From Trichosphaerium sp. ATCC 40318 (taxonomy: Eukaryota; Protista; Tubulinea), in NCBI GenBank assembly GCA_038496445.1, contig JALMLS010000175.1, positions 186,001 through 250,000 on the forward strand: a DNA stretch of 64,000 nucleotides. Direction: 5' to 3'. Position 1 is the first letter of the stretch, and every line of letters starts with the position of its first letter. Positions 10,476 through 15,567 of this stretch are shown here, one piece after another. The notes beneath the pieces were generated by a model that worked only from the letters and a program-made list of their open reading frames with translations, did no database searches and was not told the DNA's origin. The translations under genes were made by a program, and so were the position numbers.

Positions 10476-13400
10476 ATGGGTTTAGATCATGAGCAGACTC
10501 ATAAGCGTAACTTCGTTCACTGTCGCGTTACCATACTGACGGAACAGTTAAAGCGGTGCGAAAAGGAAATGAAGGAAGCAAAAAAAGCCTTGAGTGGTAG
10601 TATTCTCTTAAATAACAATTTCGCCTAAAATTTTGTGTACAGACGCCAACGGTGAAGACGCTGAAGAGGATTTAATAAAAAACAAAAAAGCCGTTGAAAT
10701 GCTTAAAGTGCGCTAACATTATCACGTTACATCTAAATAGATAATGCAGGCGCGTGAGAAGCTATTAAAAGAGAAGTTAGAAGATGCTAGGACAAAAGAT
10801 GTTGAGAGACATTTAGAAAGCAAAAACGTACCACTGTTCTTCTGCGATATGTGCAAAACTCACTTTAAAGGTAGTTTTAAATAAAACTCAACTGTATTTT
10901 TAAACCATAACCTTAAATTAACCCTTAGACAATCAAAAACGATGGCATTCATTGGAAAAAGACAACTATGACTTGTAAGTAGCGTGATAATGAGCGTCTC
11001 TTTGATTTAGAGCCAAAAAACCTAAACCAAAATAGGTGTGAAAAATGTTTTGACACATGTCAAGAAAAAGACGAATATGTCATTGAGCCTTTCACACTTC
11101 CAAAAGAAGTTTGGAACCAGGTTAGCAGTATACTTAATTTATACAAAAATGAACCTCTGCACTGTAGATCACACGACCACAGAACTTATATGAGAACTTT
11201 AAACTTGCTTTTGAAAAATACGCAAAACGACCTTGCCTTGGATGGCGTGAGCTTGAAGGAGATGTCTATGGCAAATACAAATGGATAACGTATGAAAAAG
11301 TATACAAACAAATGAGAGAAATTGCATCAGGTAATATAAAAGCACGTGACATGGAACAATTTTTCAAGTTTACATTTAGGTATTCTGGCTTGTGGTATAA
11401 AACATGATGATTTTGTGGCTATCTCAAGTGATATTAGAGTTGAATGGCTTGTATGTGATTGGGCATGTACAATGCATTCTATTGTAGTTACTGGAATGCA
11501 GCATACATTGAGAGAAGATCAAGTATCGTATATTGTTGACAACGCTTGTACAGTATTCAGTTGATATGTTGCAATTTTGTTTACGTCTTTGCTAGCTATC
11601 AAGTGCATTATTTGTAGTGGTGACTTAGTTCTCAAGTATTTGGACGTATTGAAGTCTTTTCCTTCAATAAAACTTATAGTTTCCATGGATAATACAACAC
11701 CAGAACAGAAAAAACGTGCCAAGGAAATACGTGAAGCAGTAATATCTACAAATAAAGTGCGTTATTTTTCTGGAGTCCAAATTTACATGTCGGTTCTAGG
11801 AACGTGATCTTGGTGATAAAATCTTGATATCTCTAGATGAGTTAAGAAAGTTGGGGGCCGCTAAACCAGCTCCGGTAATTGAAGATGATCCAACAAAAAC
11901 AGCAACTGTAATTTATACAAGGCATGTTTTTTCTTTTTTTTTCTGCTTTTTTTTTTTACACTTCTGTTAGTGGTAGTACAGGAAAGCCTAAAGGAGCTCA
12001 TTTTACTCGAAAGTTATGGAGGCATTTAGTTGTAAATTATCGTTATCCATATGATCCATTTGTTATTATTTGCAAAGGTGTAGCACGTGTTTTTTGGTTA
12101 AATCTTTAAGTAACTTCATTTCTTACTCGTTTCAAGACTCTCTTGTTCATATTTCAGAACGAGAAGTTGCTCTCACGTCTTTCTTATCTGGTGGAAGAAT
12201 TGGAATGGTGACTTCTCAGGACAATGTATTTGAAGATATTAAAGAGCTAAACCCGAGGTAATTGTTCCTGTTTCTAATGCTTAATACTTACTAATTTTAT
12301 AGCTTTATTTCTTCAACACCTCGCATCTACAATGTCATATACTCTCAATTTCAAACAGCTCTAGCTTTAGAAATGTCTGTTATTGAAGGAGAGCCTACAG
12401 ATACAAAAAGATTTGAAGTGAGACAAAAGGTAGATGGGAGAAACTCCGGTTTATTACTTATTTTTTAATTGTTTATCAGGTTCTACAACAGTTTTCTACG
12501 ATATTTGGTAAGCGTCTAAAGAGTTTAAGTATTGGAGGTGCAAAACCTTCTGCAGCAATCACCGCTTTCATTAATGAGTGCTTCCCAAAAACACCTTTGA
12601 GAGAAGGCTATGGCGCAACAGGTGCGTTACAGTTGTATTTCTGGTTGTCTTTACATATCATCCTTAAGAGGTTGGTTCAATGGCTAGTCATGGAGGGCGT
12701 ATACGAGCTGGAGTAGAGCACAAATTGTTAGATGTGCCAGAATTGGGGTATTTCAGCACGTACGTGAAATCCAATATCAAAAACACTACTGTGGAGAGAA
12801 TACGGGAATGATTGTTTTGTAGAGATAAACCTCACCCTAGAGGAGAGTTCTTAGTGAAGACAAGGGAAACTATAGACGGATATTATAATAATGAAGAAGC
12901 GAACAAAACTATCTTTGATGAAGACGGGTGGTACGATATTTGTTGCTTTCAACAATATTTTCAATGAAATTTGTTGCTAAACACGTGCTTTTTTTAGGTT
13001 TCATACAGGCGATATTGTAGAGTTATTTGAGCATAATAAGATAAGGATAATAGATAGGAGGAAGAATTTTTTTAAACTTGCTCAAGGAGAGTTTGTTAGC
13101 CCTGAAAGTATTGAGAATATTTACTTACAAAGCGGACTTATTGATCAATGTTTAATAACTTGTGGTGATATTTCAAAATACGAGCAAACATCAGTTTATG
13201 CTGTTGCTGTACCTAATGAAAAGGCTTTAAAAGATTGGGCAAAATCTAACAGTATAAACGGCACATACAAAGAGCTTTGTGAAAATCCTTTGACGAAAGA
13301 AAAGGTACAACAACATGAAACTAGCACATGCAGTTTAACATTTTTTTTTTCCTGCAGATATTGAAAGAAATGTCTGTTTTGTGGTCGACACATGGCATGA

Positions 13401-15567
13401 GATCTTTTGAGGTAATTGATCCCTTTAATCTTTGAGTACTATGCTAATTTACATTGAAAAGCTTCCACAAGAAATATATCTGGAGCACCGTGCTTGGACT
13501 GTAGAAACAGGTGATTTAACACCATCTGGAAAGTAAGGGTTTTTAGTAAAGTTTCTCTCATTCTTCTAATACTTTGCCCAGAAAGAGTAGGCCTGTCCTT
13601 AATCGTAAGTACAAATACATAATTGACAATGACTTGGAAGTATTGTATAGAGTACGGTGATGCAAATTAGCAAGTGTAGCTTGTTTGACAAAGTTGCAGG
13701 AGAAACAAAAAAATGTTATTAGACAAATGATTGCTGAAGCAATTGGTCAAGGAATCGACGTTGACGATGATTCTACCTTTAGTAATCAAGGTATGTCTTT
13801 GATAATCTATTTATTGGACTTGATTAATTGTACTTAGGTGGAGATTCAATGGCAGCTATCAGACTTGCGAGTGTGCTAAAGGATAAAATTAAAGTTGACA
13901 TTCCAGTAGAAATCTTACTTGAAAAGTCAATTAATAATGTTCTCTCGTATGTCACTGATAACACAAACAGCAGATCTTTTTCCCTATCAAAGGAAAAAGA
14001 AATAAGTATACGTAAGGATTCAATACTTGATGATGATATACAACAATCGTTCAAAGAAGATAGATTCGAACACAAACACATTCTGTTGACAGGTAAAGAC
14101 TTTTCTATTGGGTCACTCTACTGTTACCGCCCTGTACCTGATTGATCTTTTTCAGGTGCTAATGGATTCCTTGGGGTTCATTTACTAGAAGCGCTGTTGA
14201 AAAAGCACGAAAACGCTCAACTGTATTGTCTTGTTCGTGGAGAATCAAAGGAACACTCTGAAAAAAGATTGAAAGAGGCTTTGGCATCTCAGTGCATTAA
14301 GCTATCGGATAGTGATACAAAACGAGTTACAACTATTTGTGGTAAGTATAGAGACAACTCAAAGTTCTTTTTATTTTCCATCAATTGCGATCTCATGCTT
14401 TAAATAGGCGACTTAACAAAGCTATCTTTTTCTGAAGAACTTTGTGAAAAAGTTGATGTCATCTACCACAATGGAGCTGTAGTCAATCATATATGGTCTT
14501 ATGAGCAACACAAAGGAGCAAATGTGGATGGAACAATACAGATCCTTCGATTTGCCTCAAAAACTAGAAGTAAACTTGTAAGTACACGATAGCAAAGAAA
14601 AAGTATAACAAATCCTACGTGGCTAATGTTAATTACTAAGGTAAACTTTGTATCCACTTCCAGTGTCTTTTTCGAGCGTGAGCATTCTGGTACTGGCGAT
14701 CCTATATCTGATGATTGTAATATTGAAACCAAGCATTTAATGAAACTCGGAGGGTATGGCATAAGTAAATGGGTAAGTCATGTTCAATGTCACATGCCAA
14801 CATTGAAAAAGCGTGGTTCTTTTTCGGGTTTTTTACAAAGAATAGGTTTGTGAGCGGTTGCTCTCTCAGGCAAAGGAAAGAGGATTTGCCATCAATATCT
14901 TAAGATCAGGAATGATATCTTGGCACTCTGAAACAGGTGTTGGCAACCCAAAGGATTGGCTTAATCGTTTGATCAAAGGAGTTGTAAAAGTCAAATCTAT
15001 GCCTAAAACAAAATCCAAGCTAGATATTCTTCCAGTTGATTACGGTATGTACCCGTATCCTTTTAAAAATGTATGTGTTTATATCCTCATATTATATTTT
15101 TAGTAGCGCATGCTATTGTAGAACTTGGTACTAAGCCTCATGATAAACCGTTTAATATACATAACACAAATCTGATTTCTTTTGAAATATTCGGTGATGT
15201 TATTTGTGGACATTTAGAAGAATTCAGCGAAGATAAAAAAGGACCTCCTGTTGTTGAACATTATGCTTGGATACAAAACGTCAAAAGGTGATTACTCTCA
15301 TCGTATTTCTCTTTTTCTCAACCTAGTCCTACGGACCAAAAAAATTGTCTTTTTTATTCTTTTTTTTTTTCTAATGTTAAATCTAGCGCTATAAACTCTA
15401 CCTCTGACGGTGATGATAAAGATATTTTAACTGGTCTTCTTATGTTTAATACTGGTATTCCTACTGATGAAATAGTATCATTCTCCGTTGAGGGTTTGCT
15501 AAAACATGTAAAGGAACCACCTTTATTAGATCATAAATATGCACATAAATTCATAGCAAAACAATAA
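10476..15567 (+). CDS. Carboxylic acid reductase-like NRPS-like enzyme (coiled coil-ZZ-Adenylation-Thiolation-thioester Reductase); about 25 exons
   Basis: A domain: IYTSGSTGKPKG, EGYGATE, RGEFLVK, DEDGWFHTGDI, IIDRRKNFFKLAQGEFVSP. T domain: GGDSMAA. R domain: ILLTGANGFLG, YCLVRG, IYHNGAVVNH, NVDGT, VSTSSV, GYGISKW. N-terminal FFCDMC...NYDLCEKCF. Confidence 0.9.

Follow-up and report, generated by a model that had tools for sequence, protein, structure and literature searches.

The closest described relatives of the gene analysed here are the bacterial type I carboxylic acid reductases (CARs; Nocardia and Mycobacterium CAR and FadD9, model NF041592, structures 5msc and 5msp). In these enzymes an adenylation (A) domain resembling that of the acyl-CoA synthetases (ACSLs), a carrier (T) domain with a GGDS serine and an SDR reductase (R) domain with TGxxGxxG and YxxxK motifs follow one another in a colinear order. 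Fungal CARs (types II-IV, for example Neurospora NcCAR) and Lys2 are likewise eukaryotic A-T-R enzymes that reduce acids via a phosphopantetheine thioester, with A domains that are of the NRPS type and not ACSL-like; we know of no report of a ZZ finger in them. ZZ fingers (PF00569), among them those of p62/SQSTM1, p300/CBP and HERC2, are known from signalling, chromatin or ubiquitin-system proteins. In solved ZZ domains both zinc sites are strictly conserved, and neither folding nor the positioning of the binding residues can do without either zinc atom; Asp129 and Asp149 of p62 are ligands of the peptide alpha-amino group (PMC6098011).

Within the 64,000-nt window (the whole stretch of DNA analysed, whose positions are used for all coordinates), we identified a gene on the + strand whose spliced model shows a predicted CAR-type A-T-R enzyme with a helical N-terminus and a ZZ-derived finger fused in frame. 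It shares the domain order and motifs listed above with the bacterial type I CARs, which have neither N-terminal helices nor a ZZ finger. We consider it likely that the whole is best explained as an amoebozoan CAR-like enzyme with a conserved N-terminal module that may serve protein contact or regulation.

Gene structure and the A-T-R core

The gene occupies positions 10476-15567 and becomes a single open frame after splicing, with 27 exons, 1205 codons and a TAA stop. Its 26 introns (42-99 nt; one GC-AG, four with AAG acceptors) agree with the roughly two dozen counted in the first-pass annotation, and the accompanying view that the gene has long resided in this genome or lineage fits the intron number, the seven paralogues and the Amoebozoa-wide clade described below. 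The model was curated by hand and then checked against homologues. It is colinear with transcript-derived homologues, and three doubtful junctions were resolved through this colinearity. Alternative junctions (exon 3 start at 10741; 11552/11604; 12077/12158) were rejected, as they gain or lose residues relative to the homologues. An intron-minimising dynamic-programming model passed over conserved motifs and was replaced by the hand-curated one. The single GC-AG intron was accepted because no other splice preserves the frame of YTSGSTGKPKG. The features, all on the + strand, are:

10476-10596, 10643-10707, 10750-10870, 10929-10974, 11036-11120, 11168-11330, 11380-11547 (+): exons 1-7
11596-11738, 11800-11921, 11971-12077, 12137-12257, 12303-12417, 12480-12621, 12669-12759 (+): exons 8-14
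12823-12930, 12998-13304, 13358-13411, 13462-13532, 13582-13651, 13700-13790, 13838-14092 (+): exons 15-21
14156-14341, 14408-14577, 14641-14772, 14846-15044, 15104-15287, 15387-15567 (+): exons 22-27
10476-10821 (+): N-terminal charged helical region, residues 1-86, exons 1-3
10837-11060 (+): ZZ-like finger, residues 92-126, exons 3, 4 and 5, interrupted by introns 10871-10928 and 10975-11035
11168-13651 (+): adenylation domain, residues 147-740, exons 6-19
11922-11970 (+): GC-AG intron within the P-loop codons, 49 nt, a length usual for the gene
13700-13962 (+): carrier (T) domain including Ser774, with Pfam PP-binding on exon 21 (E 2.3e-5)
14074-15564 (+): thioester reductase (R) domain, residues 850-1205, exons 21-27

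All catalytic motifs are intact in the spliced model: the P-loop, GYGxTE, TGD, the A10 Lys, the carrier Ser, TGxxGxxG and the Tyr/Lys pair. The adenylation motifs lie at residues 344 (TSGSTGKPKG), 502 (GYGATE), 574 (FHTGD) and 714 (PSGK). GGDSM is found at residue 771, with the phosphopantetheine Ser774 encoded at 13846-13848, TGANGFLG at residue 855 and YGISK at 1013 (Tyr codon 14755-14757), where both members of the Tyr1013/Lys1017 pair are present. The complete A-T-R module initially recognised from GGDSM, TGANGFLG and YGISKW is therefore borne out, each motif being in place and in a single frame once spliced.

Pfam, NCBIfam and PDB matching of the window protein was carried out one exon at a time, and the spliced 1205-residue protein was compared with homologue proteins by BLAST, with local HMMs and in a tree. 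The Pfam and NCBIfam matches per exon give the order A-T-R in one polypeptide, colinear with the Nocardia CAR P0179. Pfam AMP-binding matches exon 7. The bacterial type I CARs provide the top profile and PDB matches for the A-domain exons, with NF041592 as the top model for exons 15 and 16 and the CAR chains 5msc, 5msp and 5mso as the top structures for exon 16. In the R domain, NAD_binding_4 (Pfam) and TIGR01746 each match three exons.

Family membership and predicted reaction

Profile, alignment and tree comparisons of the predicted protein place it in an amoebozoan family of CAR-like enzymes. The protein aligns end to end with its homologues (BLAST E = 0), including P0002 (35% identity over residues 4-1171) and P0020. 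These two match NF041592 in a single stretch across nearly the whole profile, R domain included, with other models far lower. Their scores (445 bits for P0002 and 566 for P0020, against 1855 for the Nocardia CAR) do not reach the equivalog cut-off of 1300 bits, and the window exons, scored singly, give 16-52 bits each; as the family falls far under this cut-off, its enzymes cannot be equated in function with bacterial CAR.

The A domain is only 26-30% identical to that of bacterial CARs. It is about 27-31% identical to ACSLs, which it also resembles in a FACS-type signature near DGWFHTGD and in its C-terminal LTPSGK...LY ending. ACSLs, however, stand on their own, at ~650-700 residues, and lack carrier and reductase domains, whereas the window A domain continues in frame into T and R. 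In a quick IQ-TREE run that included 13 ACSLs, the A-T-R adenylation domains all split from the ACSLs (support 100) and the window A domain fell within its own amoebozoan clade (99); the joining of this clade to the bacterial CAR/FadD9 clade has a support of 88 only and depends on an assumed root. The A-domain phylogeny proposed in the first-pass annotation accordingly groups the gene with CAR/FadD9 and not with acyl-CoA synthetases, in a separate and intron-rich amoebozoan clade. A Lys2 or NRPS-like identity was considered and rejected, as such models, including the Lys2 model TIGR03443, match only the T-R part.

From its domains and motifs, the enzyme most likely reduces acids to aldehydes (or alcohols) at the expense of ATP and NADPH. 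We predict that the adenylation domain would activate a carboxylic acid with ATP, probably one that is hydrophobic, such as a fatty acid. Transfer of the acyl group to the phosphopantetheine arm at carrier Ser774 would follow, and the C-terminal SDR-type reductase would use NADPH to release an aldehyde, possibly reducing it further to an alcohol. The genome holds two matches to the phosphopantetheinyl transferase family (PF01648).

Alternatively, the R domain may carry out a four-electron reduction to the primary alcohol, making this a fatty-alcohol-forming A-T-R enzyme and not an aldehyde-releasing CAR, a possibility that we take seriously but consider the less probable one. The top solved-structure match for exon 25 is the MxaA reductase (E 8e-10), which forms an alcohol, with no CAR chain over threshold, and on R-domain exons the CAR model scores lower than TIGR01746 and the Lys2 and MxcG models. 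Over-reduction of aldehydes also occurs in CAR reductase domains themselves (PMC10168641). However, the homologues align to the CAR profile across the R domain too, and two- versus four-electron chemistry is not readable from sequence. Given that the R-domain exons match generic NRPS-type reductases better than CAR, with exon 25 closest to MxaA, the product of the predicted acid reductase is uncertain. The neighbouring genes gave no hint of a pathway; a biosynthetic gene cluster was considered and rejected, the neighbours being a thioredoxin and an NHL-like gene.

The N-terminal helices and the ZZ-derived finger

Residues 1-86 are 46% charged and contain no proline. The proposal of a charged coiled coil of ~90 residues is borne out only in part: the heptad a/d pattern is clean over residues 12-39 and weaker over residues 47-78. 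Two long helices are predicted for the closest full-length homologue (pLDDT about 95), and the start M-x-D-H-E and the block LEKRE..LLEKL are conserved among homologues.

The finger that follows reads CDMC ... RWHSLEK ... YDLCEKC. Zinc site 1 is complete, consisting of C94, C97, C119 and C122 (codons 10843-45, 10852-54, 11037-39 and 11046-48). None of the four ligands of zinc site 2 is left: in the homologue alignment, S110 (10949-51) and K113 replace the Cys pair, and E128 and E131 the His pair. The alignment agrees with the original reading of the finger as keeping the four Cys of one ZZ site and lacking the second (SLEK, no His pair).

Several lines of evidence show that the finger is of ZZ ancestry. 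Pfam, whose ZZ gathering threshold is 21.4 bits, returned nothing useful on the three separate exons across which the finger is split. With eight unrelated ZZ domains from the same genome as a local profile, the spliced finger scores 16.4 bits at the correct place, compared with at most 3.4 bits for finger-less proteins and 24-32 bits for intact relatives. It aligns with the fingers of homologues P0002, P0156, P0036, P0039, P0043 and P0057, which pass Pfam ZZ. In an AF2 model of P0002:1-170, the finger has a pLDDT of 85-90, and the top Foldseek matches are all ZZ domains (p300, CBP, p62; TM 0.66-0.81, although E is only 0.009-0.03), with an rmsd of 1.2-2.3 A across about 45 residues. With p62, p300/CBP and HERC2 the window finger has in common the four Zn1 Cys and the CxxC ... 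YDLCxxC spacing. It also has two aspartates of p62, one directly after the first Cys and one two residues ahead of the third Cys pair: in the alignment, D95 corresponds to p62 Asp129 and D117 to Asp149. It differs from these fingers in lacking every ligand of the Cys2His2 Zn2 site, in having Asn at the position of p62 Asp147, and in being attached to a metabolic enzyme.

Because solved ZZ domains strictly keep both zinc sites, the window finger may be weakened or repurposed, and the loss of site 2 may disable it. It is possible, though less probable than not, that the finger is a decaying remnant whose function has been lost in this paralogue and which now merely spaces the A domain or caps it structurally. 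Such decay is consistent with the replacement of all four Zn2 ligands in a fold said to require two zincs (PMC6098011), with Zn2 ligand erosion that varies in degree over the family and the paralogues, and with the low score on the ZZ profile relative to intact relatives. Yet the four Zn1 Cys, D95, E112 and D117 are still conserved, and across the family C110, C113, D108 and E103 (P0002 numbering) vary little or not at all. The same Zn2-less state is found in P0115, which comes from a different source, and an unrelated ZZ domain in the same genome (L017) has no Zn2 Cys pair, its stretch ending before the His positions. These two cases suggest that a one-zinc finger is a tolerated variant and not a product of decay.

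We favour a protein-contact role for the N-terminal module, a pair of amphipathic helices together with a ZZ-type finger that is conserved across the family ahead of the core; the module would act outside catalysis in partner docking, self-association or regulation. In this paralogue the finger retains zinc site 1, along with the two acidic residues that grip the alpha-amino group in p62, and has lost zinc site 2. A more specific proposal, which we regard as improbable, is that the module is a one-zinc peptide reader, whose retained Asp95/Asp117 pocket would take up a partner protein by its free N-terminus or its tail and so switch or localise the acid reductases.

Distribution and meaning of the fusion

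The ZZ-CAR combination is real and common to many amoebae. Six other genes in the same genome have a ZZ-like finger ahead of A-T-R, giving at least seven ZZ-bearing copies overall. Transcripts that each carry ZZ, A, T and R come from Protostelium nocturnum and Clastostelium recurvatum, and two Logan contigs of RNA size have the same content. Full-length transcripts from Protostelium, Clastostelium and a Physarum relative encode this architecture, and their alignment with the window gene runs from residue 3 to the C-terminus. The combination ZZ + AMP-binding + PP-binding + NAD_binding_4, which the first-pass annotation proposed to look for, recurs in Protostelium, Clastostelium, Physarum relatives and further assemblies. 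The annotation had also inferred that a CAR-type enzyme gained a eukaryotic regulatory or targeting module; helices and a ZZ-derived finger are indeed fused in frame to a CAR-type core, but the gain was not a one-off event in this gene, and a regulatory or targeting role is speculative. Of the annotation's refuting condition, that the architecture be common and already characterised in protists, only the first half holds: a literature search covering CAR in Amoebozoa, amoebae and protists and ZZ domains with A or R domains found no ZZ-CAR fusion, characterised or otherwise.

That the helical and ZZ exons form a separate small transcript, with the reductase starting further downstream, is highly improbable: the frame stays open for 55 more codons before a stop if intron 5 is retained, but a usable start codon is absent from exon 6 upstream of the conserved A-domain N-terminus, introns 1-5 are canonical GT-AG introns of 42-61 nt that preserve the frame, the alignment with homologues from transcript assemblies begins at residue 3 and passes unbroken across the finger to the A domain, and the six paralogues are laid out likewise.

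CARs are in demand as biocatalysts, and the types known to us are bacterial and fungal. The window gene is part of a separate, expanded protist clade that bears an additional, putative protein-recognition module. Should this module turn out to gate or target the enzyme, small-molecule metabolism would be under the control of a ZZ reader, a rare arrangement, and the ZZ fold would be able to work with one zinc. Were the peptide-reader proposal true, aldehyde production in amoebae would be controlled by a module otherwise known from the reading of N-degrons and histone tails. If the module neither gates nor targets, the family still broadens the known range of CAR-type enzymes and raises the question of which products amoebae make with so many acid reductases.

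Gene model and catalytic core

Three-frame translation and the raw sequence resolve the intron-rich eukaryotic CAR-ZZ gene, predicted to encode a carboxylic acid reductase (CAR)-type enzyme with N-terminal helices and a ZZ-like finger, into a model of 27 exons. The features of the region are as follows.

9784-10232, plus strand: thioredoxin gene (WCGPC; Pfam E 1.4e-9), containing introns
10476 (ATG) to 15565-15567 (TAA), plus strand: CAR-ZZ coding region, 1205 residues, no internal stops
11922-11970, plus strand: GC-AG intron, with the sole GC donor among 26 introns
12136, 12668, 13461 and 14640, plus strand: the four AAG acceptors

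The 26 introns, where the first-pass annotation had counted roughly two dozen, span 42-99 nt, and 25 have a GT donor. The GC donor at 11922 was chosen because no other splice leaves the P-loop intact, and three doubtful junctions were resolved because a single choice at each preserves the spacing seen in homologues. A model minimizing intron number was wrong at several places and was rejected. The thioredoxin gene is the next gene upstream and has the same orientation, leaving ~240 nt between its end (near 10232) and the reductase start; an additional 5' exon is therefore unlikely. Downstream, an open frame at 16204-16512 weakly matches NHL repeats (E 0.005), and we saw no link to the reductase.

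The gene was searched against Pfam, NCBIfam and solved structures one exon at a time, and Pfam recovered AMP-binding, then PP-binding, then NAD_binding_4. All core motifs are intact in the spliced model: TSGSTGKPKG, GYGATE, FHTGD, PSGK (the A10 lysine), GGDSM, TGANGFLG and YGISK. The domain order and the last three motifs bear out the complete adenylation, carrier and thioester reductase (A-T-R) module read earlier. The best NCBIfam match of A-domain exons 15 and 16 is NF041592, the bacterial CAR equivalog model (E 6e-10 and 3e-14), and that of the R-domain exons is TIGR01746, the thioester reductase domain. Among solved structures, exon 16 matches the bacterial CARs 5msc, 5msp and 5mso, and exon 25 matches the MxaA reductase. 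The product may be an aldehyde or an alcohol; CAR reductase domains themselves over-reduce aldehydes (PMC10168641). The genome contains two matches to the phosphopantetheinyl transferase family.

N-terminal helices and ZZ-like finger

Residues 1-86 are 46% charged and lack proline. The ~90-residue coiled coil proposed earlier holds for its charge and for the clean heptads at residues 12-39, but the pattern weakens at 47-78. The finger (residues 92-126) is encoded across three exons. ZZ domains have a Cys4 site (Zn1) and a Cys2His2 site (Zn2), with ligands strictly conserved in solved examples (PMC6098011). Alignment with relatives confirms that the finger keeps the four Zn1 cysteines (C94, C97, C119 and C122) and has lost all four Zn2 ligands, with S110, K113, E128 and E131 at their positions, as first described. 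D95 and D117 are the counterparts of p62 Asp129 and Asp149, which bind a peptide's alpha-amino group (PMC6098011), whereas Asn115 replaces p62 Asp147.

Eight ZZ domains encoded by unrelated genes of this genome were used to build a local profile; against it, the spliced finger scores 16.4 bits at the expected position, and finger-less proteins score at most 3.4. In the AF2 model of residues 1-170 of the homologue P0002, a pair of long helices (pLDDT about 95) is followed by a loose linker and the finger, and every top structural match to the finger is a ZZ domain (p300, CBP or p62). An unrelated ZZ domain of this genome (L017, G000:C126:38015-38128, minus strand; the fetched stretch stops short of the His positions) has Asp and Ser in place of the Zn2 Cys pair, and scores 40 bits on Pfam ZZ without that pair. 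This Trichosphaerium strain may tolerate one-zinc ZZ variants.

Placement among CARs and acyl-CoA synthetases

The A domain is roughly equally similar to bacterial CARs and acyl-CoA synthetases (26-31% identity). In a quick maximum-likelihood A-domain tree with an assumed root, all A-T-R proteins split from 13 synthetases (support 100), and the CAR-ZZ model falls within a clade of 16 (99) whose named members are amoebozoan except for one rotifer record. The bacterial core of two Labilithrix-like sequences and five actinobacterial CARs makes up a separate clade of eight (100) together with one further assembly sequence. The phylogeny called for in the first pass sets the A-T-R proteins apart from the synthetases, but the amoebozoan clade is only weakly linked to the bacterial one (88). 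Proteins of Naegleria, Acrasis and Anaeramoeba fall in other parts of the tree, and P0160, annotated as FadD9, lies outside the bacterial clade beside Anaeramoeba. Rotifer-labelled proteins (Didymodactylos carnosus records, P0003 / P0155) sit inside the amoebozoan clade adjoining Clastostelium; a contaminated assembly or acquisition of the gene by a bdelloid rotifer through transfer could explain this.

Homologues give a single long match to the CAR equivalog profile at 445-566 bits, below its cut-off of 1300. Judged from sequence, the amoebozoan family is most likely CAR-like in predicted function but is not a member of the equivalog. The earlier observation of a CAR-type A-T-R core fused to a ZZ-derived finger is borne out, and its interpretation is supported in part.

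Distribution of the fused architecture

On several contigs, same-strand NAD_binding_4 and ZZ matches are separated by ~3 kb. Ten loci of the genome were compared by tblastn with the CAR-ZZ model as query, placing A-T-R genes on contigs C30, C10, C111, C1, C32, C19 and C80. At six of these seven loci a ZZ-like finger, variable in its site 2, closely precedes the A domain; none was seen at C1. The loci on C19 and C80 (L008 and L009) share almost identical finger peptides and an identical layout; they are two haplotype contigs or else arose by recent duplication. Three additional, more distant NAD_binding_4 loci lie on C17 (L005), C128 (L010) and C47 (L006); the first two have an upstream P-loop motif, and on the third the reductase part alone was seen.

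With exon 16 as query, the whole protein library yielded full-length relatives of 1050-1330 residues, and the proposed combination of ZZ, AMP-binding, PP-binding and NAD_binding_4 was found above Pfam threshold in six (P0002, P0156, P0036, P0039, P0043 and P0057); in P0020 and P0115 the ZZ match is slightly under it. Identified sources are transcriptomes of Protostelium nocturnum and Clastostelium recurvatum. P0002 derives from two 3.6-kb Logan contigs with a complete, intron-free frame, its nearest named relative being a Physarum transcript. Alignment of the CAR-ZZ protein spans residues 4-1171 for P0002 (35% identity) and 3-1190 for P0020, and because these alignments are near full length we regard helices, finger and core as one conserved unit; in relatives, all three lie on single transcripts. 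In P0068 (1566 residues), the A and R domains are accompanied by a trehalase domain and two ZZ fingers, possibly through merging of gene calls.

The fusion may extend beyond Amoebozoa, since weak ZZ-like matches (11-16 bits) are present at the N-termini of Anaeramoeba P0159 and of P0160, the protein annotated as FadD9. We found no description of it in the literature searched. The ZZ-CAR architecture is common in amoebae yet unstudied, and is a variant of CAR-type enzymes already known.
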